64,000 nt of DNA from Trichosphaerium sp. ATCC 40318 (GCA_038496445.1 JALMLS010000228.1:1-64000), one strand, 5' to 3'; shown: positions 3,001-57,274, counted from the first letter of the stretch. The notes: generated from the letters alone by a model not told the origin. Numbers and translations: made by a program.

Positions 3001-5935
3001 CCAAGAAATAATGGTTGAAGTACCTCTACCAACACAACGCTTGACTAAAATCTGTTTTATATTTTCTTCAAAGAACTCTTCTGGTCTGTTTTCAACTAAT
3101 GCAAGACCATCAGCAAAATTTTTATCACGTGACATTTTCGTACATCCTACTGCTTCTTCAGTTAAATTTGTGATTAAAAGACTGCCCAAGTCAGTTGCTC
3201 TTGATCTGTAGCACTACAATATAAAGTTAGATACTTTTTAAAACAGATCAGTCTTTTTTTGTTTACCTCTATCAGGTACTGATCATCTAAGAGTTCTTTT
3301 GAATTTGCTGTCATATCATTTATAGGAAATACCCTACAATGTTTATCTGGCATACACTCGGTATTGCAGTCATCATCTGTATTACATTTGATACGACATA
3401 GTCCTTAACAAATTGTTTTAGATCAAATTGTTTTAGATCTACAACAAGAGAAAAGAAAGAAAATAGTACCGTCAATGCAAACCCGAGGCCCGCTTGCATC
3501 TTGCTCACATCCATCAAAGATAGTACATCCCTGAGCATATATTTCTTTCTCGCATATGCTTGTGTAAGGAATAAACGCATATTGTGCTGTACGTGACTGA
3601 GTAGGAGGTTAGTATAGACAGGCAGCAAAGCGAGATAAGGAGTGAAGCTCTTACTTCTCGATAGATTTGTCCACAAATATTTGTCTGTTCCAACTGGTTA
3701 ACTTGGTCGTAAGCAATAAACTCTTGAACAATATCCTACATATACCAGTAAGATGGCTTACTCAGGTTACAAAATAAATTAAAGTATCATACAGTCATGC
3801 ACTTAGGAAATGTGCAAACGTCTTGCAGTCCATCTGTGCTTGGTATAAGAACTGGCACATCAACAGTTAGGTCTCTAGCTCTGCAGCATTGTTTAGACAA
3901 TAACCTAGGTAATAATCAGCTAGATCTTTGCGTCTCTTCTTTTGTGGAACATACGCAGGGTTGCAGCAAGGATCTAGCATAAATGCAGGAGAATGTGGTT
4001 CTTCACTGCACGAAAATGAATCAGTAACCACACTCGTAGCTGAAAATGGTAGCTCTTTAATTAAACGATTACGAATTAGTTCAGTGCAACCAATCCATGG
4101 CCTTGATAACTGTCCAGCTAGAATCTACAAGAAAGCTACTTTAGACAGACTAACACACAGTTTGATTTTCCTTCTATGTTTATGTTTGTGTGTTTACCTG
4201 CGCTGAGACTTGAAACCCGTGTAGTTCATCAAAACTTAATGGAGAATCATCAAAAGAATTGGCAACAGTTTTCATGTCTTAACAAAACCATTAGAAAAAA
4301 GCTAAAGACAAGCATCTTACAAGTCACCACGGCACTCATTTCTTCAAAGTTACATTCAGATGTTGGTCTTTCAGCGTCAGCTAGAGGGAAAGTACCTTCC
4401 AAAGGCTAATGTCTTGTTAATAGATCCTTTTATTTCAGTTTTTTGAATGACTGGTACCTCTCCTGTGGCACCAACAACCCTAGGTGTTGTCAAAGTACAC
4501 TCCGTATCTTTATCAAACCATTCTCGTACAAGAGGAAACGCACTCAATATACCTGTATAGTCCAAACCAACACGAGGGTTTGCAGGCCAAGATACTCTGT
4601 TAAAAACAGCTATATTAAGCCTCTGTGGTATTAAGGATGTGTTTCCATAATTAAGAGGAATACCACTAAAAGGGATAATGATTAGGACTTCGTAAATGAA
4701 TAAGTTTCAAAAAAAAGTTCATTGTACCCTGCCTGAGCAAAAGAATGCGCAAGAGAATCAGAAGCGATTGGTGGGGATTTATAGCATAGAATTCCTTCTA
4801 ATTCTACACAAGCAACATCATCTATAACAACCCAACCATTGCAGTTTATTTCCAATCCAACTGAAAAAAAAAATCAAAACCCATTTTGTATTTCTATTCC
4901 TATTTACTTACGTCCAAACCAGAAGTCTGATATTGGAATCAACGACTCACCTGTTATTCTCATTAATGCAAGAATAATTATTATTTGAAAAGGTGTGACT
5001 TGTGTCGAGTAGTAAAGGTCTCAATATTACGTACGAGGAAAAGTAACGTCGCCTTTTACTGTTTCGGCTATTTCGTTTTCAAACGCCAAAATTAATGTGC
5101 CATCCCATTCTCCTTTACCTGCTTCAAGTGACATAGTACGAAGTTCTGAGCAACACAAGGATAGTCCATCTTGAGAGTTTGTAGCAGTGTTCAAACCTAT
5201 TGAAACAGTGTAAATACATTTGGAGCTCAAGCAGCAAATGATGGGCGCCCAGAAACAAAAGTATCTAATCAAAGTGTACCCACTTTAGCCTTTACATTGG
5301 CTGATAGTTCTAGATCTATCCACAAGTAAATCAAGTTCAAATCAGAACCAAGGTCTACAAAGTCTGTAAACAAAGAAAACCTCCAACTTTTTTTTTTGTC
5401 AGTTCAGCTTGAAATCACGTGCCAGTTGATTTGTAAAGTATTGTGACCTTATCGCAAGTCCCTGGATTCTCTACCTGCGCGTTGAATACTGCACCGTTTC
5501 GAGGAACAATGATAGAGCTAAGAAAGAGAAAAAGTTAATTTTTGTTTACAAAAAAAACTCTGGTATTGTACGGAACTCACCTGTCCGTATCATCTATGCA
5601 TTTAGAAATCGGTGTGCCCTCTTGTAGTATTTTTTAGGCGTTTTTAACGAATGACAAAGACATACCAAGACAAGGGTAATTACTACCGTTGCAACACCGT
5701 TTAAATCGTGGATACGCATTGATGTCGCCAGTACAAGACGTATTAACAAACACTGGCTCTGAATAATCTATTTCAAATGTAGTGCCAAAGTATTGCGCTC
5801 CTTTTATGTTTTAGCGTTATTAGAGCCGTTTTACGTACCAAATACATTACTTTCAGCTTCGATTGCCACAACGCGTTCAATCCTGGGCGCAGCGCGTGAT
5901 AAGCCTACCAGGAACAGTAGAAGCACAATGCGCAT
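1..5935 (-). CDS. Large multi-intron cysteine-rich surface/membrane protein: signal peptide, long Cys-rich ectodomain, C-terminal multipass TM region (runs off the window start)
   Basis: ATG at 5935 gives MRIVLLLFLVGLSRAAPRIE (signal peptide). Sampled exons are Cys-rich (CRIKCNTDDDCNTECMPDKHC; CLCGDNKSGGSDCF). Exons at 1-260 are hydrophobic helices (GASAIILLYLSVLVYVCLG; FVALLWFVDAIIVLILYALII). Not every junction traced; could be two genes. Confidence 0.55.
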
Positions 5936-6265: not shown

Positions 6266-8383
6266 TTAGGTTATTGTCTTATCAAACATATGTTTACTAG
6301 ATTGCAATAGTTGTCTATTCCACAAAGGGTTTTGTTTAGTAATAAATAAGATAATGTTGATTTACCTTTGTGATGACTTCTTTTGTAGTCCGTTGTCTTC
6401 AAAGCTCTCCCAGTTCCATTTAAACTCGGGATAAGCCACTTCTAATATTCTAGGATAATTTGGAATTAAACTTACTGCTCCTAACTGAACAAGTTGGTAT
6501 GTAGCGATGCGATACCTGTTTTTTTTTGTTATTATTTTTTTGCATTTTTCGAATTATTTTACACGTACCACGCTTCTATGTTTGGTATGCTCAGTTTTTC
6601 TTCAGCATATCTCACAAATCCTATAATATTCTCGCCAATCTCCCAATACCCTCTTGGGGTTGTTTTCGTTTTAGGACGTAACCTAAACGGGAATATTAAA
6701 CGACAGAAAAAATTAGGAATAACATACTTGAAGGAGTTCTCATGCCATGAGAATTTTGGATATAATGTCTTCAACGTTTGGTAGAGACTGCCGTATCTAC
6801 ATTCAATTTGACTAATTTAAGACAACGAAGATCAACATACTGTTGTGTTATCCACTGTAACTTTCCATGTTCAAAAAGTTTTTTAGGTGAACAATCATGC
6901 CAATTATCTAACGCGTGGAATCTCATCTTTTCGCTTACACTATTTATTCTTGATCGTTGATTATCTTCATTAAACCAATAACCATTAGGGACAGTCCTTA
7001 AGTTCATATAAGTCAAAGGACTCCAAACGCACATTGCTAAAAAGATCGCACGAAAACTTTTCCACATCCCAATCATGTTCAGGGTATACAGCCATTAGAA
7101 ACGTAGAGTATGAATTGCCATAGCTTTAAAAGTTAGCTAAAGGTTATGCATTATGATTTCGTACTTGCTGAGTATCATTCTTGTTCTATTTCCCAGCACA
7201 TCTTGAGGTGTTACTGAGTAGAAATCATCAAGTGTTTCAATTCCAAGCTCAGATCTGCTTGTTTCGAGAATTGATCTGTGGTGTTGCAGAAGACTTGTAG
7301 GTGGCGGTTGACGTTTTACTCGTTTTTTCCTACTCCTACTGTATGTGCGTGAGTATCACATTATGTTCAATATGTACGCACTTTATGTAAAACTCAGTGA
7401 CGTCCCAGCGATGCTCTGGATACAGATTTAGGATCATATCTATCAAAGAGTTGTATCTTTAGATCTATTAGTGTCTTGTAATACTTAGTTTCGTATGATG
7501 TACCTTGATATTACTCCTGACACTCCTTTAGATATAACATTTGCATGAGGTATACTATACCAACCATCATAGGTAGTAACTCGTAGCTCCTCCGAAATAA
7601 CGTCCAGTAGTTGCCTTTGATTTTCAACGTCATCCCAGTGATTTTGAGATTGTTTCCTAGTCACGTGTGAGTACCTACATCCCACGTGACCAAAACATGT
7701 GTATCGTACGCAAATTTTGTAGTGTCCCACTTAAATTGTGGGTATAAAGCTACAAGTGAAGCCGGTAGAGAAGCGTCGTGTCTATTTGTATTATAACTTG
7801 TTTTAAACTAAAGTTCTACTTACTGCTTCAGGATTGGGCGACCACCGTTACTCTCCACTTGACATGTGAATACACTATACCAATCATCAAGTGACTTGAC
7901 ATTTAGTTGCAGCGCTATTTCATTCAATTTGGTTGTTTGTTTGCACGGCAGATTCCAGTCAATGTTTGTTCTAAAGAAAACCAGTCTGTCAACAACCAAC
8001 TGACATTTAATAACAAGCACGTACCTAACCCTCTTTGCTGGATCTACTGCTGTAGGGTTAAAGGCTAATAACAGATTTGTAATTGATCCGTTAAATCTAA
8101 GCAGTGTAAGCGCTATTTATCATAGTGGTGGCGTTGTAGCGGTATGTGAAGCTAAAATGAGTAATTTAATTGACAGTACTAACTTTGATAGTAAATACTT
8201 TCCGCCAGCCTTTATTACGCGCGTATGTGTGACTTTTCGCCAATCTTCGTGAGTTTCAACGCCCAGTCTGATACTTAGGCGCGTGAAAACGCGCTTTAAC
8301 GAAGCTAGCTGCTCTAAAATACTATGAGAAGTGGTTAATAGCAAAAGCGCTAGTGCCTGGTGAAAAGTCCGCAAAACGAGCAT
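6266..8383 (-). CDS. Multi-intron protein of tandem helical repeats (W..xxNQRxxLxxIxxxLxVxxxDxWY type); function unknown
   Basis: Repeats in exons: HWDDVENQRQLLDVISEELRVTTYDGWYSI; LNEIALQLNVKSLDDWYSV; PNGYWFNEDNQRSRINSVSEKMRFHALDNWHD; PRGYWEIGENIIGFVRYAEEKLSIPNIEAWY. ATG at 8383 (MLVLRTFHQAL). Confidence 0.6.
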
Positions 8384-8600: not shown

Positions 8601-10402
8601 TTAACATGATGTGTCCATTTGCGTTGAGTACCAGTTACCAAAAGATCGCCCTCCTGTACATTCTTCTTCGTGCATTTCAACCATTTTTTTTCCATCAAAT
8701 TCTTTTAAGCAGCATGGGCATGACCCATACTGATCACAGACTTCACACCACACCCACGTAGATCCTCCCCTCCATAAGCGCTCGCCACATATCTGACAGG
8801 TCTCACATTCATTTTTGTACTTCTTCTTAGCAGCGGCAAGTTTTTTTTCCTGTTTTTTTTTTTCTTTTTTCTGTCTTGTCTCCTCTCTATGAACATTCTC
8901 CTCCTCAAATTTTTTTGTTTAGCATCTCTCTTGAGTTGCCTTAGCTCTGCCTTGTGTTTAATTTCTTGTTCTTTATCTATCTTTTTTTTTTTTGCTAATT
9001 CAACCATTTGGGTAGCAATATAAGCATCCCCTTTTGGTACTGTCATTGGACCGATTGTTAGGGCATTTACTTGATTGCTGTGGCTGTATAGCTCATCCAT
9101 AGCGTTTTTGGCTTTTCTAGCAGTATCGGTGATGAAGGAAGGTGATTGTTTAGGTTGGACCCCTACATTTTTTGAAGCATGATTTAAGATCAACTTTCTG
9201 TTGTAGGGTACAATGCCCACGGACTTCCATGCCGATTTTAAGATTTTGGGAGACAGTGCTTTGGTCTCTGCAGCTGCAACAGCCATTATGTCATAACGTC
9301 GTGTTTTATGTTTGATCTCTGTGCCACTTTCAATTGTAATTTTCCTGTTTAATTTATATGCCTGAGCTAGGGTAGCAAATGGCTTGTCATCTAAGGGTTG
9401 CGTGAAATGTGAGGTATGAGGCACCCATGTGATAGTGTGTACATGCTGTTCAAGGCATTTTTGTAACGATTCTGTTTTAATGTGGCTGGCCAATCTATCA
9501 AGGAATAAAAATGCAACCCTGTCCCCTTGAAAAATTTTCAAGTGCTTTAAGAACACATCAAGAATTTTTGGCCAAATTTCGTTGGTCACATACCCTTTAC
9601 CATGAAATATATAGTATCTAGGCCATGAAGAGCGGGTATTTGTTGGTCTGGGTACTGTCATTTGATGCACTTTTTGTTCATCACCTTTGTTTTTTGCTGC
9701 CATTATATAAATTGACACCAGTACGCGTCCAGAGGCTGAAACAAACGGAATCAACGTGAGAGGGCTGCTTGTGTTATTGTTCAGCCGCCCAGCAATTTTC
9801 ATCGTTCTATCTTGAAAGGTAATGTGTTGATACTTGTCACTTGATGCTGTTATCAACTTTTTGTCACAATTGAACATCAAATCTGGGTTCATATAATACA
9901 TCTCTGAGAATCGCTCAAAACCATCACACCAAGCTTCTACACGTGGCAGAGTGACAGGAGATACACGGCAGCGGCGAATTGTCTTCGAAACAGTGGCTTT
10001 GAGTTCAATATTGTGTCTTTCAGTGAAGCCATCACACCAAGCTTCCATACTGGTCGACTTCTTCTTCTTGTACAGACTTTGTGCCATAGATATCAAGGCT
10101 GCACGTGATAGAGGCATATGACGCCCGCTAAAACTCAAACAGTAGCCAACCAACATTTCTTCTTCAAAATCCGTAAAAAGTTGGTTGCCATGAGATTTGA
10201 AATTCTCCGAATTCTCCTTTGCAAATGCCCTCTGAACACGCTTTCGTAGTGATTCTGATTTAACACAGTGTTTTTTAGCCACTGTGATGCAAATTTGACG
10301 AATTGAGAGTGTTTGTGAAGGTTTACGCTTCTTTAGTTTATAAAGTACTTCCTTTGTGGCCTCTGCCATGTTTTTAGCCTTTGTGGCACTTCTGCGAGGC
10401 AT
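8601..10402 (-). CDS. DDE_1-type transposase with N-terminal HTH/CENP-B-like region; C-terminal Cys-rich Zn finger lies in a shifted frame
   Basis: Catalytic motifs FNCD, LFLDRLASH and SHFTQPLD, with 35 residues between the 2nd and 3rd Asp. The main ORF stops at 8705; an alternative frame after a poly-A run encodes CQIC..WVWCEVC..CPCC..H and stops at 8601. Confidence 0.88.
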
Positions 10403-10546: not shown

Positions 10547-11746
<1,200 letters not shown>

Positions 11747-23774: not shown

Positions 23775-25674
23775 TCAAATTCGTCTTCCACAAAGTCTGT
23801 CTGGGTTAACTACACTATCGAAATAATCTCCAAATAACATCACCAACACAGCATTATCGGCATTATTAATATTATCCCTTTCAATCTCAACTGCAACCTT
23901 AAAGTTCAACACAATAAGAACAAAATAGACTGATAACCTATAGGACGTACAGCTGTTGTACTACTCATTGATCCATACGTGATAGCGGGTTGCTCAGGAT
24001 CAAATCCTGAGTATAGTATGTAAGTCACAAGAAAGTATAGAATGTGATTGTACTGACAAAGATAAATAACTAACCTTGTATTGGTAGTTGTACAAGCTTA
24101 ACTGTGTTAGTATCAGATCTATAGCTAGTGATATACAACAGTTGTTCCTCTCTTATTCCATCTGCCGAAATACCAATAAAAGTGCCACTTGCATTGGGAA
24201 TAAAATCCATACCAATAGCAACGTCATCAGGATCTATGGACCGAGATAATGTTTCAACATTATCAATAGGAGTTAGAGTTAACTTTGCATTAATTGTTCG
24301 CAAATAGAATTGAGTTTGCGAAGACAAAAATCCCTTTTTTGCACTTTCCCCAAAAGACATGATACCAATCAGGCGCGATACAGGGTGATATGTTGCTGTT
24401 AACCCGTTTGAGAGTTGTGTGGTAGTATCAACTATAAAAGAGCCCTGTTGAAGAAAATCAGCGCTTGAAGTTGAAACATAACAGCACATACAGCAGGACT
24501 ATCATTTGTGTCTACAATCCAATGCATTAAAGATAGGGTGCCTGAGAAAACGATATCAAAGCAATTACAAAATTCTCCGCCATAGACAACATCATACATA
24601 CCGCTGGCTATTGCTAAAAAACATGTTATTGAGTTTTCTAAATAGATTCTCATTTTGTACGGATTTCAGCATCGCTTGTAGTAATTGTCTTAGTAGAGTC
24701 AATGATTGAGTACAAATTGTTGCCATCTGATCTATAAGTAACCATATATTTGTTATCAACTGAATAGAATGTTAAAAGGTTGACGAAAAAAAAAAAAACC
24801 TAACAAAAAGTACCTGGATTATGAGCTATCTTTGGAAGAAGTTGTATAAGGTTTTGTTGAGTATAAAGAACAGTTCTTTCTCCCATTATTAATCCCTATT
24901 AGACACTAAATTAGTAAACATGGATAAGATATTGTTAACACGCACTCCATTTTCTAAATCTTCAGTAAGAAAATGCAAAAAAACTAATCCTTGGCCTGCA
25001 AAGGTTTCCCCAACAATAGCAAATTCATCATTCCCAACAGCAATATTTGCGTGATTACCGTTCCTAATTCTGTAGTACGAAAAATCACCTCTTGCAAGTC
25101 CTAAGTTTCAGTAAGATAACCACAATTGTAAGATAAAAAAAAAACCACTTCTATCTAGATACCTTCTTTAGTGAATACAACGACAATCAAGTCTTCGACT
25201 GTTGAGGAAGAATCCAAATACTCAAAAGCAAGAACAAAATATTCCTTTAAATAAATGAGAAAAAGAGGTTTTAGACCAATCCAAAAGGCCAAAATCACGT
25301 GTGCACACGCGATTTTTATTGTACGACTATTGAAAAAAAAAAAAAAAACCCCTAACAACGTACCACGCCGTTTATCACTCCAGAAGCCAGCACTGGTTTT
25401 TCTCGGTCACCTGTTACAGCATCTAACTCTGGTATGAGTTCTGTGATTCGAAATGGTTTAAAGACATCTGTTAACGTGTTAGATGGTACAAAACTGTTCA
25501 ACTAGACTATGTTTCTTAATTACCCACACAATCGCCATCAACTTCAATTTTTCGTGGCTGAGTGCTTGTTTGTCCTCTTTTAAAGTGAGATTCGCGATCT
25601 ATATGTGCTTGAGAGATCAAGACAAATAGGGACAGCAATGCAATTATGGTTGTATGAGAACTATGTGTAGTCAT
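23775..25674 (-). CDS. Uncharacterised secreted multi-intron protein
   Basis: ATG 25674 MTTHSSHTTIIALLSLFVLISQA (signal peptide). First exons splice in frame (..VLASGVINGV|EYFVLAFEY..); includes ORF 24070-24489. Confidence 0.55.
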
Positions 25675-41082: not shown

Positions 41083-44000
41083 ATGCCAGAGTCACCACAG
41101 GGTCGACAGCGTCGTGCAATTGGTCCTGTCAGAACAGTGCGCAGGAAGTACAGGGCCGCACCTTATTCCGCATCCCCACTGAGCCGTAGAAGGTCTCAAG
41201 GGCAGTCGCCTAAAAGACCTCAAACACCTGTACGTCCTAAATTACTTTGAAGCTTTCAATTAAATGTTTTAATACTCTACACATTGAAATTTGCTTTGAA
41301 AAACGCCTTGTATTGCTTCTTCCATGATTTTTCGAAAAACGCGGTATTTCTAATAACAATTTAGGGAGGCTCCAGTGTATTTGGTTCTATTGCTGGTTGG
41401 GTTAGCTCGATCTTCACTGGATCAAACGCTACAATAGAACCAACCTTTCAAACACCACAAAAGGAACCATTTTTTGCTACTGAATTAAACACACCGGTGC
41501 GTAAAGCTTTTTATGCCTTTTGGCGGCTAAAAAAAAAATAAAACAAAAACAAATTTATTAACCAAAATGGCTAAAAAATTAATCTTCCGACGTTAGGAAC
41601 CTTTTCAGGAGCTCCCAAGACAACAGCCAACGTCCCCAACAACTGAAGCGGCGAAACTACCCACCAAAAAAAAACTTAGCCGTATGTACCAACAAACACC
41701 TACTTTGCGCTCACCTGTAATAGCACACCCTCGTCAACAAAAAATGAGAGAAGCGAAGATGGTCACCACTCCAAGTCGTAAGCCAATCGTGCTTCGTGGC
41801 CCTACACCAGGTGATTCATCAACGTTCATTAACACTGCCTTTGGTGGCATTATGGACAAGAATTCGCGTTTGAAAACAAATCCCCCTCAAACGGAAAAGC
41901 CACCTCTGTGTGCGTTTGACGTCAAACTAAATCTATTTGCTGGGCGGGATTTTTTGTTTTAATTTTTGCCTTTTTTGTCTTTACGCGTAGACATGTATTT
42001 TTACGCGTTATAATGTTTTGCATCGTTTCGAACCAAATTTAATTTATCGCAAAACCCGCTCTTGCAATTAAAAACGTACTGACATTGATACTAGCTAAAC
42101 TAAGAGGTTCGGCATTCGGTGGACGTCCAAGTTCTGGATTACAACCATACTACCCAAAACCAGGTGGTATTGGCACACCTATACCAGCGCGCTATGCTCA
42201 TGGTCAGATTGAACGGGTTGATCGCAATAAACTTTTTGGAACGCCTGTTTCAAGCGAAAGAATTGTTCGTGATATCCCTAGGAGCTATGAAGCTTCACCA
42301 CGGCCAAATCGTACCCCTAGTAGGCACACTAATACCTATTTGCAATTCGACTCTCCAATGCCACCACTTGGTGATAAACGTAAACGTACACGTGAGATGG
42401 AGGGTTTTGAAAATGTGAAGCGTATTAGACAGACTCCTACTGAAGATATGACCGATGAAGAGGAGATTTTGGTACGTATTTTATTGTCGTTTTGTTTTGG
42501 AAGTAATTCTGCAATTGGCAGTTTTTTTTTTGTCTGTTTATTTAATTTTTGTTTTAGCGCATATTGGCAAATCCTAGGAAGTCCGCACTCCTTGCTAAGC
42601 TACTTTCGGAAATGAGTGGCGTTGATGGCGATAAAGCAGCTGCACGCAAAGAACTAAGGCGTAACCGCGAGAAAATTCGTAGGAGGCGTACACGTGTTAA
42701 GCAACAGGATTCTGACTCGGATTCTTCTATGTCTATTGAAGGTAGAACAAAGAGGAGAACGAGAACTAGAATTACAGAGAAAAGCAACGAGAGTACGTCC
42801 AGTTCTAAAATTTTTTTCGAGGAATTTTTTTGTTTTATTTTTTCATCACTTCTGACAGTTTGTCTTAAGATTTAGCAAAGAGAAGAATATCTCGCCTTGC
42901 AGCTCAAAAGAGGGCTAAGGAAGCCAAAAGAAAAAAAGCAAGAAAAGTGAAAGCAGTTGCATCAGAGGTGGGCGATTCAGACGAAAAGCCGCTTGTGGAA
43001 CAGACGTCTACACTTGAACGAAAAACGAAGAAGACAAAACCAAAGCCTGTACCAGTATCAATAATGGATCAAGTACCTGAAAAAAAAGAAGAATCAGTCG
43101 ATGCTAATGCAATGGATATTTCTATGGATAAGAAGGTTGAAAGCAAACCTTACTTGCTTAACTCCACACAGATACCAAAATCTACTCCTACAAGGTCTCT
43201 TAAATTCACTAATGACCAAGGATCCCCATGGCCTAAACAACAGGGACCTTCTGATAGCTTTAACGTGACATCAACAGTAAGTCAACAAAAAAAAATTACA
43301 CTCGATTTTTTTTTATATTTCGGTTTTTTTTTCAGACCTTATAGACTTCTTTGTTACTTTTATTTATTTTTTCTTTAGCCTGATACCTCTTTCTCTAAGC
43401 CAGGTGATATAGCACCAAAGTTCAATTGGGGTGGTAAAGAAACAAAGCTACCACCAGCTTCTTTTGATCCTATTAATATGGTCAAAGACGATATCAGCGT
43501 TCCATTAACTACTGATGATATGGAAGAAAGCGGAAAGAGTATGGATGTAACTCTAGAGTCCTTTGACAGGAAGAACAATGGTATGGATATCTCAAAGGAT
43601 GAAAAATCAAGAGACATTCCTATGAAAGTCGTTACTGCGCCTACACCACAAAAGGCGAAGCCTTTCTTGCTCAGTTCTGAAGGCGTCAAAAAACAAGGTT
43701 TTGGTAGTACAAATGCTTCTGAAGAAGCTTCAGCAAAGCCTGCTTCAGGGTTCCCAGGGTATCCTGTATTCCCAACTACACAGACACCACCAACGCCCGA
43801 GAAGAAGGAGGAGAAGAAAGAGGAACCAAAAGAAGAGAATAACAACGGGTTTAGTGTTGCTGTTGATACTTCAGCTTTTGCTGGTTTTGGAGGTAAACCT
43901 GTAGAGAAAGTACAACATGAAAGAGCTGATGAACCAGATGCAAATGATTCGTTTTCTGTTTCTGGGTTTAAAGGATTTCAACTGCCTGCTTCTGTTGCTC

Positions 44001-46219
44001 CTAAGAAAGAGGAAGAGAAGAAGCCAGAGAAGAAAGAAGAGGCTCCACGTCCTATGGGCTTTGGTTGGGGTATTCCTGATCCTTCCGCTGCTGCAAAGCC
44101 TGCTGAAGAGAAGAAACCTGAGACTCCGGCACCTGCTCCTGCTGCTGCTGCTGCGCCTGCGGCTACACCTGCGGCTACGCCTGCTTTCTCTGCGACTAGT
44201 GCTTGGGCATCTGGTGGACAAGCTGATCTAAGTGGTCTTAAAGCAACACCACTTCCAACAAGTGGGTTTGGTATGCCTGCTGCTACACCTGCAGCTACGA
44301 CTGAAGAAAAGAAAGAGGAGCCAAAAGCAGCGTTTTCATTTGGCGCTGCACCTACTTCTGATACGCCTGCACCAAAGGCGAATATCTTTGCTGTACCTGC
44401 TGCAACTGGCAAGACAACAGTACGCAGAACTTTTATTTTTGAAATTTTTAATGTATTTTCCTTAACATTGTTTGTAGGATACACCTTTGTCTCGTGCTTC
44501 AAGCGCTGGTAGCGATATGGATATGGAAGGTGAAAATCAACCATCAATTGCTCCAGTGGGTTCAACTGCATTTAACTTTGGTGGTAACTCAGCTTCAACA
44601 TCAACGTTTGGTTCTGGAGCTGCTGCCAGTACAACTGGTACGTTCAGTTTTTTCTCATTATTTATTCTTTTCTCTTGTTGTAACGATAGTGATTTGTCCT
44701 GCTATCGTATCTGTTTATTGTTCCTTTGGGAATATGAAAGATAAGCAAGCTCTACGTTTGTTAGTAATCAGGACTATCCCTAACCCGTCACTTAAAAACT
44801 ACGCCCCTTTTCAATGTGATTTGCTTCTTGAAAGCATCGGCATGTTCGAAACTTGGCTATACCATACGGGCTCCCGGATAATCCGGTGCTTACCGCAAAT
44901 ATTAATGCTTATCGCACCTTGCTACTTCGGGAACATTTTTATTATGAAATTATTTGGTTTTTTTTATCAACTAGCTCCTTTGTTAACGTTCTTTCAAGGT
45001 GGTGATGCTAAAGCAGCGTTTTCTTTTGGTGCTCCAGCACCTGCATCTAATACACCGGCACCTGCAGCCAAAACTGAAGCACCAAGCAATAGCGGTGGTA
45101 ATACCTTTTTCTTTGTACTTTGCGTTTTTTTCTGATCGTTTTTTTTAGTCTTCGTTTTTGGTGGTTCTCCTGCTCCTAGTAATACACCTACGCCAGCTTC
45201 TCAATCAACCGGATTTAGTATATCCGCTGGTTCTTTTGGCCAAAGTAGTACGTTTAACGTCGCTAGACTTTTTTCTTCTTCGAACGTTGTTTTTTAATTT
45301 TTCAACTTAGGTACTTCACCTGGAACTGGAACTGCATTCACTGGTTTTGATGCGTTCAAGTCAAACAGTGAAAACAACTCATCATCTAACTCTGGAGGCT
45401 TTGGGTCCACCGCGAGCACAGGAGCTTTCGGTTCTACAACAAGCAATTCAAGTCCATTTGGTGGAAACAACTCGAGTCCTTTTGGAAATACCTCAAGTCC
45501 ATTCGATAGTAATAATAACAACACTGGTGGTAATAACAATGGAAGTTCTGGATTTGGTGGCAATAACTCAAGTCCTTTTGGAAATACTGGTGGTAATAAC
45601 AATGGAACCTCTGCGTTTGGTGGCAATAACTCAAGTCCTTTTGGTAATACTGGTGGTAATAATGCTGGTAATGGTCCATTCGGTGGTGGTAATTCTAGTC
45701 CATTTGGCGGTGGTAACAATAATAATGGAAGCTCTGCGTTTGGTGGTAATAACTCAAGTCCTTTTGGTAATACTGGTAATAATAGTTCTGGTGGGTCAAG
45801 TCCATTCGGTGGAGGTAATAACAGTGGTAATAATGGAGGATTTTCAGGTATGTTTTTTTTTTTAAAGTAGCGCTTCAAAACGCGTAGCGCTCTTTTGAGA
45901 AAAATATGAGTTTGCATGTACAAGTACTAACTTTTTTTAATTAGGCTCGTTTGGATCCTCTTCAAGTCCATTTGGTGGAAGTAATAATAACGGAGGCTCC
46001 AACCCATTTGGAGGCGGTAATAATAACAACGGCGGTTTTAGTATGGGTTCAACTGGTGGCAGTAATAATAACGGAGGCTCCAACCCATTTGGCGGCACTG
46101 GCTTCAGTGGCGGAAATGGAGGCTTCAACATGGGTGCAGCCCCTTCAAATACAGGCGCTCCAAAACGTCGTATTTTGAAGGCAAGAGGACGTCGTGGTCG
46201 CCGCCGAGGGGGTAGGTAG
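41083..46219 (+). CDS. FG-repeat nucleoporin of the Nup1/Nup153 (nuclear basket) type
   Basis: Basic N-terminus with RAAPY; FSFG/FNFG/FVFG repeats; many SPFGG(N)n repeats; C-terminal FNMG..KRRILKARGRR basic tail typical of Nup1/Nup153. Confidence 0.8.
44680..44937 (+). ncRNA. Candidate intron-encoded box H/ACA-type structured RNA (~255 nt)
   Basis: Inside the unusually long intron 44638-44998. 3' hairpin UCCCGGA/UUCGGGA with an internal pocket and GGUGC/GCACC upper stem, followed directly by ACA-UUU; ANANNA (AUACCA, 44859-44864) upstream; several further hairpins 5'. About 41% GC versus very U-rich intron ends. Confidence 0.65.
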
Positions 46220-56300: not shown

Positions 56301-57274
56301 TTAATTCAAAGCCCGGTCCAGAGGGTATTCTCAGAGTGCCACCTCAATCTACATGGGAATATACTAACTATTGTCCGCCCAGAGACCTTCAGGTACATAT
56401 AATACCTTCAAATCTCTTTCGTGGTTCTTCAACTTTTTAGTAAGTTAACTGTTACTAGATAATGTACTCTTGGCGAGTTATGATTGAAAGAACAGAAACA
56501 GAGAAAGGTATACCTACAACATTCTTAAGTCATAATGGTCACATGCACGAAATTGGAAAGAAATGGAAAAGCACAAAGCAAAAATGCGATTACACAACAG
56601 ATTTTAGTGTATGTGCAGACGAAGCCAATTGGTAATGAACCACGATTCTACGCTCAAAAGACTAAATAGACGTTAGGGTTGACACAGACATAATTGGAGA
56701 AGCTGATCCTTACGACTACAACGACCAAAAAACAGTTTTATTTAATGATGTATGGAACTCAAATGAAAGAATTAAAACACACTTTTTATGGGATGCTGAA
56801 GGAAAAGACACGTGGACATTCAACGGACCAGGTACATTCTCTCAATATCATCGCCTTGTTCATACATTTAAATTTATTAGCTTCAACTGACGAGATGGGA
56901 AGTGTTGCTTTTAGCTATTATCCAGCCTTTGATTATTTTGTTTGCATGAAAGGTTCTTTGAACTTACTAGGTCAATTCCCTTTTCTTGGTTTCATTTGCG
57001 GCACTTACTGCCACGATCCAAGGATAGAGGAAGCACCGTATTTTGGGTACACATTCAGAGATAAAATGGCTGAAATCTTACTTTGATGTTTAGATGGAAG
57101 CTCGAAAATCAAGGTTTAGCAGGTGGCTGTATTGCTAGCATTAACGAGACGTGTCCTGGTTGTTATGAAAAAGGTGGAGAAATGATGCACCCTGGTATTA
57201 CTTGTTTTGATGGTGGCCTAACTTCATTCTTAACTGGTGAACCTGCTGTATTTCCTACAAATCCAAAGAACTAG
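53311..57274 (+). CDS. DOMON + EGF-like repeats + copper type II ascorbate-dependent monooxygenase (DBH/MOXD1-like)
   Basis: DOMON YRLYW..GWIALGIS..M..DIILGWVD; EGF CSGNGICD..GQCVC..W.GSDC; Cu ligands AHHCVV, QMHYDNP, GHMHEIG, TDEM. Confidence 0.9.

Follow-up and report, generated by a model that had tools for sequence, protein, structure and literature searches.

The unusually long intron at 44638-44998 (+) of an FG-repeat gene raises the question of whether it hosts a functional RNA and, if so, of which kind. The original prediction had described an H/ACA-type RNA of about 255 nt hidden in this intron and had placed a telomerase RNA foremost, with a U17/snR30-like RNA and a pseudouridylation guide as alternatives. 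The analysis reported here covered the whole 64-kb stretch of DNA that contains the intron (hereafter the window), and every motif on which that prediction drew was found where it had been placed. Its H/ACA part proved to be the best-supported reading and, as judged from its sequence, the intron probably carries a candidate orphan box H/ACA snoRNA; the telomerase headline was not borne out, the telomere-like 9-mer on which it was built occurring at background frequency.

The boundaries of the intron were assessed from the reading frames on either side. The flanking exons, at 44478-44637 (open in the FG-repeat frame) and 44999-45097, encode one protein once exactly 361 nt are spliced out, and the exon frames join only on this exact removal. 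The segment begins with GTACGT, ends with CAAG and interrupts the frame in phase 1, so that 44638-44998 is, by the logic of the sequence, a real intron. The unusual length originally pointed out was confirmed within the same gene, the six sister introns that could be delimited measuring 51-97 nt versus 361 nt here. The intron also showed a GC content of 0.37, versus 0.24-0.32 in the six sister introns. When calculated over 40-nt segments, the GC content was 0.25 in the first 40 nt, 0.33-0.55 from about 44680 to 44940 and 0.23-0.28 beyond, which delineates about 255 nt of higher GC content between two stretches of typical T-rich intron sequence.

A frame open through the segment (44494-45135) had been pointed out together with the possibility of a coding exon. 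The open frame does exist, but it differs from the frame of the upstream exon. Since it is not that exon's coding frame, the coding-exon alternative falls, and the true frame runs into a stop at 44742-44 if the intron is read through. A repeat or transposon reading was also discarded, as no second copy of the intron core was detected within the 64-kb window. The T-rich start of the intron (44665-44682, +) is an exact 18-nt match to 3440-3457 (-), with an E value of 3e-4 within the window; this pyrimidine-rich match is probably a low-complexity chance one. As for splicing signals, GTACG was found at five of the seven 5' splice sites delimited in the host gene (four GTACGT and one GTACGC), a consensus that is unusual compared with GTAAGT or GTATGT. 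The second-longest delimited intron (45848-45944, +; 97 nt) carries two copies of GTAGCGCT separated by 9 nt, each including the palindrome AGCGCT, and no snoRNA boxes were seen in it.

The host gene (42085-46219, +) encodes a protein with about 29 FG dipeptides, with FSFG, SPFG and FGG repeats, and with a basic C-terminal tail (APKRRILKARGRRGRRRGGR). Seven exon translations were submitted to Pfam and matched no family, so that the label "nucleoporin" derives solely from the FG dipeptides and the FSFG and SPFG repeats; on this composition it is a reasonable label. Protein relatives were sought exon by exon rather than with the joined spliced protein. A word search with exon 43379-44419 returned no relative, a full HMMER search of 1.84 billion representative proteins with the largest host exon gave 0 matches, and exact-product look-ups carried out for three ORFs of the window matched none. 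The host is apparently an FG protein that is either very fast-evolving or lineage-specific.

Folding of the intron RNA returned five hairpins in all, three of them upstream and two within an H/ACA core of about 136 nt (44803-44938). The 5' and 3' hairpins of the core were recovered in all folds, giving the hairpin-hinge-hairpin-tail arrangement. The 5' hairpin (44803-44857, +) is a single unbranched stem-loop of 55 nt with 18 bp, an MFE of -13.0 to -14.4 kcal/mol, no large pocket and a basal stem of just 3 bp, and it adopted an identical fold in every context tried. The H box AUACCA (44859-44864, +), which conforms to ANANNA, is located 1 nt past the 5' hairpin and 7 nt ahead of the 3' hairpin, and is 81% unpaired in the ensemble. 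The 3' hairpin (44872-44932, +) showed an MFE of -19.4 kcal/mol and a z of -2.35, and consists of a 7-bp lower stem (44872-78/44926-32), a pocket of 6 and 7 nt formed by the strands UAAUCC (44879-84) and UUGCUAC (44919-25), and a 5-bp upper stem in which GGUGC (44885-89) pairs with GCACC (44914-18). The ACA box (44933-35), the sole ACA in the whole intron, abuts the lower stem, and together with the 3 nt that follow (44933-44938, +) it would define the mature 3' end.

The spacing between the upper stem and the ACA is 14 nt, within the 14-16 nt that the class rule prescribes between the target U and the ACA. The folding ensemble leaves the H box, both pocket strands and the ACA 80-94% unpaired. 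With an ANANNA sequence in the hinge and an ACA after the 3' hairpin, the segment possesses both boxes of an H/ACA snoRNA, thus confirming the ANANNA box, the H/ACA hairpin and the pocket 14 nt from the ACA that had originally been described.

Three back-to-back hairpins precede this core (44683-44763, +), with an MFE of -23.1 kcal/mol and a z of -3.46, and none of 200 shuffles was as stable. Over this stretch the GC content climbs from 0.25 to 0.35-0.40. In the first hairpin ACGAUAGU (44683-44690) pairs with GCUAUCGU (44701-44708), in the second UAUCU (44708-12) with AGAUA (44739-43), and in the third AGCAAGC (44744-50) with GUUUGUU (44756-62). Inspection by eye and a listing of ANANNA and ACA sequences revealed neither a second H/ACA box pair nor C/D boxes in the upstream hairpins. 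A length of 255 nt is possible for the putative RNA given this structured, GC-richer upstream part, and to this extent the length originally proposed is tenable, whereas the canonical core accounts for only about 136 nt of it. The structured upstream 80 nt, which a plain snoRNA does not explain, and the 3-bp basal stem of the 5' hairpin both count against the snoRNA reading.

The frequency of the H/ACA layout was evaluated by using a loose descriptor that was drawn up after the candidate had been seen, so that its numbers are generous to the candidate, and twelve block-wise dinucleotide shuffles of the window were taken as the background. The 3' hairpin and ACA alone returned 36 matches in the window versus 38-51 in the shuffles, and this part of the descriptor therefore carries no weight by itself. 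The full descriptor, comprising the 3' hairpin, the H box and a closed 5' hairpin at least as stable as -12 kcal/mol, returned 4 matches in the window versus 1-6 (mean about 3.2) in the shuffles, per 128 kb. Processing of this mean, which corresponds to about one match per 40 kb of single strand, resulted in a chance of about 1% for one given 361-nt intron. Only one of the four matches in the window, the candidate, is wholly intronic and on the sense strand. The other three were taken as chance because they overlap coding ORFs: the match at about 11250-11403 (+) overlaps a 2OG-dioxygenase-like exon, the one at 24042-24203 (-) a 139-aa ORF and the one at 9834-9967 (-) a 565-aa ORF.

These values bear on the alternative that the intron contains no functional RNA, being either a long intron with chance hairpins and boxes or one whose structure serves only long-intron splicing. 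Such a reading is in line with the 3' hairpin and the full descriptor being as frequent in shuffles as in the window, with a whole intron that folds only marginally better than its shuffles (z -1.14), and with a candidate that has no family match, target or homologue; it is opposed by the low chance of a full match in one given 361-nt intron, by the coincidence of the gene's size outlier with a GC-richer island of about 255 nt, and by upstream hairpins that beat 200 of 200 shuffles. Taking both sides together, we consider the absence of a functional RNA unlikely. What goes beyond chance is the combination, namely that a complete H/ACA layout in sense orientation falls entirely within an intron of outlying size and coincides with a compositional island there.

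The linker of 39 nt between the upstream hairpins and the H/ACA core carries CAGGAC, UAU and then CCCUAACCC (44769-44786, +), a telomere-template-like 9-mer at 44778-86, and this is where the telomerase reading originates. The intron would host an H/ACA-type telomerase RNA of about 255 nt (44683-44938), in which CCCUAACCC would template TTAGGG up to a boundary imposed by the GUCCUG/CAGGAC pairing, with the H/ACA domain conferring stability on the RNA. Several features agree with this proposal. The 9 nt correspond to 1.5 telomere-complement repeats and lie 3 nt past the partner of a 6-bp helix, and the linker that holds them joins a structured 5' domain to the H/ACA core. The upstream sequence has an unusual amount of structure, and its GC content exceeds that of intron filler. 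A 9-mer of this kind would turn up by chance in 0.7% of introns of 361 nt. CAGGAC (44769-74) is indeed complementary to GUCCUG (44696-701), and the helix forms in the MFE fold. The boundary pairing originally proposed therefore does form, but a 6-bp partner is not rare, as we estimate, rather than compute, that one would occur within 100 nt in about 10% of cases by chance. The template-like motif itself is left unpaired in only 35% of the folding ensemble, and a mostly paired template speaks against the proposal.

A count over the whole window weakened the motif further. CCCTAACCC has one exact match in the window versus 0.14 expected; however, when 9-mers of (CCCTAA)n were counted in all six permutations and on both strands, 3 were observed versus 2.5 expected, and the telomere-like 9-mer is thus at chance frequency in the window. 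The other 9-mers of this set, CCTAACCCT and AACCCTAAC, are found at 8024-8032 (+) and 56672-56680 (-). At such a frequency several of these 9-mers would fall by chance beside structured RNAs genome-wide, and with dozens of intronic structured RNAs in a genome about one coincidence with a 9-mer is expected. A 9-mer next to a structured RNA, being expected a few times per 64 kb, is therefore insufficient to nominate a telomerase RNA unless it is joined by a pseudoknot or a junction element, by conservation or by TERT binding.

The structural elements were then considered. The original prediction had recognised an H-type pseudoknot order in the proposed stems GUCAC (44787-91)/GUGAU (44816-20) and UUUCAA (44809-14)/UUGAAA (44828-33). 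These stems turned out to be feeble (-2.9 and -1.2 kcal/mol), and they share bases with the 5' hairpin of -13 kcal/mol, so that the two structures are mutually exclusive. An interleaved pair of 5+6 bp was present in 87 of 500 shuffles (17%) of the 54-nt stretch, and the putative pseudoknot has no U-rich or A-rich triple-helix arrangement; by stem energies and shuffles, no pseudoknot with a triple helix was recognised next to the template. The 5' hairpin is unbranched and hence offers no CR4/5-like three-way junction, and no CR4/5-type junction or equivalent activating stem was identified in the folds. No telomerase covariance model matched at E<=10. In intronic snoRNA processing the RNAs are trimmed from the intron and a 5' extension has no cap protection; an intron-derived telomerase RNA would likewise have no cap guarding its long 5' extension.

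With the structural tests failed and the motif at background frequency, an intron-hosted H/ACA-type telomerase RNA appears very unlikely, and we give little credence to the working outlined for it, with CCCUAACCC as the template, GUCCUG/CAGGAC as its boundary and the H/ACA domain as the stabilising element. If it were true, this would be the first telomerase RNA derived from an intron, as well as the first amoebozoan one, and the H/ACA type of telomerase RNA would be older than the animals. A 2025 review that lists the groups of eukaryotes whose telomerase RNA is known refers to Amoebozoa only once, for the suspected loss of telomerase in Entamoeba (PMC12133305), and no amoebozoan telomerase RNA was reported in the literature searched. 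This lack of a report, together with the small residual chance, keeps the locus of interest.

The 3' hairpin also bears on a second alternative named in the original prediction, a U17/snR30-type processing RNA whose 3'-hairpin loop would dock it on expansion segment 6 of 18S. In this family the m1 and m2 elements, located on opposite strands of the 3'-hairpin loop, pair with rm1 and rm2 of 18S, the rm1 sequence being GGAAU and m1/rm1 being conserved, and in all U17/snR30 RNAs the loop ends 7 nt before the ACA (PMC2664660). The recognition loop of the candidate ends 7 nt ahead of the ACA as well, a spacing that follows trivially from its 7-bp lower stem and is not discriminating. The m1 element reads AUAUUCC, AUAUUCCUA, and m2 reads AAACCAU. 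The loop strand AUAAUCC is one base off m1, but the difference falls on a base that is critical for pairing, and the 3' strand UUGCUAC is unlike m2. The rm1 sequence of 18S, GGAAUA, lies inside GCATGGAATAAT in 32 of the 35 18S genes compared, which come from diverse eukaryotes, and AUAAUCC pairs with this nearly invariant segment only with internal mismatches. No SNORA73 or snR30 model of Rfam matched at E<=10. With m2 absent and the m1-like strand mismatched, the U17/snR30 identity was rejected, and we regard it as extremely improbable.

The remaining reading, a guide snoRNA, was addressed by searching for a target. The pocket of the 3' hairpin specifies 5'-GUAGCAA-UN-GGAUUA-3', and the target set consisted of 112 eukaryotic rDNA loci retrieved from a metagenome collection by means of an 18S 3'-end pattern (a viral collection gave 0), of which about 28-35 span the 18S markers checked and about 17-21 the 28S markers; an LSU or SSU is complete in about 19-35 of them. 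The scan covered the 3' pocket and two conceivable 5' pockets, and allowed G-U pairs, mismatches and 2-3 unpaired bases. Among the 112 loci, sites forming 11-13 of the 13 pairs with the 3' pocket did not recur, and neither did contiguous bipartite matches that left 2 or 3 bases unpaired; the two conceivable pockets of the 5' hairpin had no target. The best recurrent partial sites, GUCGUGA-UR-GGGAUA and GUAGUCA-UA-UGCUUG, contained 2-3 mismatches and were rejected. The 18S target originally suggested for the pocket did not hold either, the fit to the nearly invariant GCAUGGAAUAAU segment being poor. The absence of a target in the conserved rRNA core suggests that the RNA would be an orphan unless it guides modification of a lineage-specific site; as regards conserved rRNA, evaluated on the 112 metagenomic loci, the candidate is apparently an orphan.

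The Rfam check proposed with the original prediction was also run, on the whole window at the gathering score and on 44400-45200 at E<=10, and returned no family match for the candidate, neither snoRNA nor telomerase. The only matches obtained on 44400-45200 at E<=10 were two chance matches on the opposite strand, mir-9 and CrcZ. The lack of a match places the candidate outside the described families and is compatible with membership in the H/ACA class.

The candidate snoRNA is most likely a pseudouridylation guide. From the intron, its layout, its boxes and their spacing we infer how such an RNA would be expressed, processed, bound by proteins, ended and targeted. The box H/ACA snoRNA gene would sit on the sense strand of the host; once the intron had been spliced out and debranched, exonucleases would shorten it as far as the H/ACA protein particle, with Cbf5/dyskerin, Nop10, Nhp2 and Gar1 bound to both hairpins, to the H box AUACCA and to the ACA. 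The product would measure about 136 nt (44803-44938); retention of the three upstream hairpins would lengthen it to as much as about 255 nt. Its 3' pocket would pair with the target sequence given above, the unpaired U being converted into pseudouridine. If the H/ACA reading holds, the locus would represent one more unannotated orphan snoRNA in a little-studied amoeba lineage, useful to annotation and not surprising.

Finally, the candidate was compared with known systems. It shares with vertebrate-type telomerase RNA (Rfam Telomerase-vert), which has an H/ACA scaRNA domain, the succession of a template-like stretch, structured elements and a 3' H/ACA domain, and also a helix near the 5' side of the template. 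Unlike that RNA, it has no convincing pseudoknot/triple helix, no CR4/5 with P6.1 and no CAB/BIO-type loop, its 3' hairpin opens into a canonical guide pocket, and it lies in an intron, lacks its own promoter and cap, and matches no model. The likeness to U17/snR30 (SNORA73) consists of being an H/ACA RNA with a loop 7 nt before the ACA and one m1-like strand, whereas the candidate lacks m2 and its m1-like strand fails to pair with 18S rm1. Long or composite H/ACA RNAs include the tandem H/ACA scaRNA U93 and long yeast snoRNAs, which the candidate presumably resembles in its total of about 250 nt and its more than two hairpins; however, its upstream hairpins differ from theirs in having no placeable second H/ACA box pair and no C/D boxes. 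Compared with intron-encoded H/ACA guide snoRNAs, such as vertebrate SNORA, the candidate has no Rfam sequence or covariance match and no conserved rRNA target, its 5' hairpin lacks a pocket, its host is not translation-related, and a structured, GC-richer stretch of 120 nt, perhaps part of the RNA, lies upstream. With these guides it shares the location in a sense-strand intron of a protein-coding gene, the hairpin-hinge-hairpin-tail arrangement with ANANNA and ACA, the open pocket 14 nt from the ACA, and a core of about 136 nt that is of typical size.
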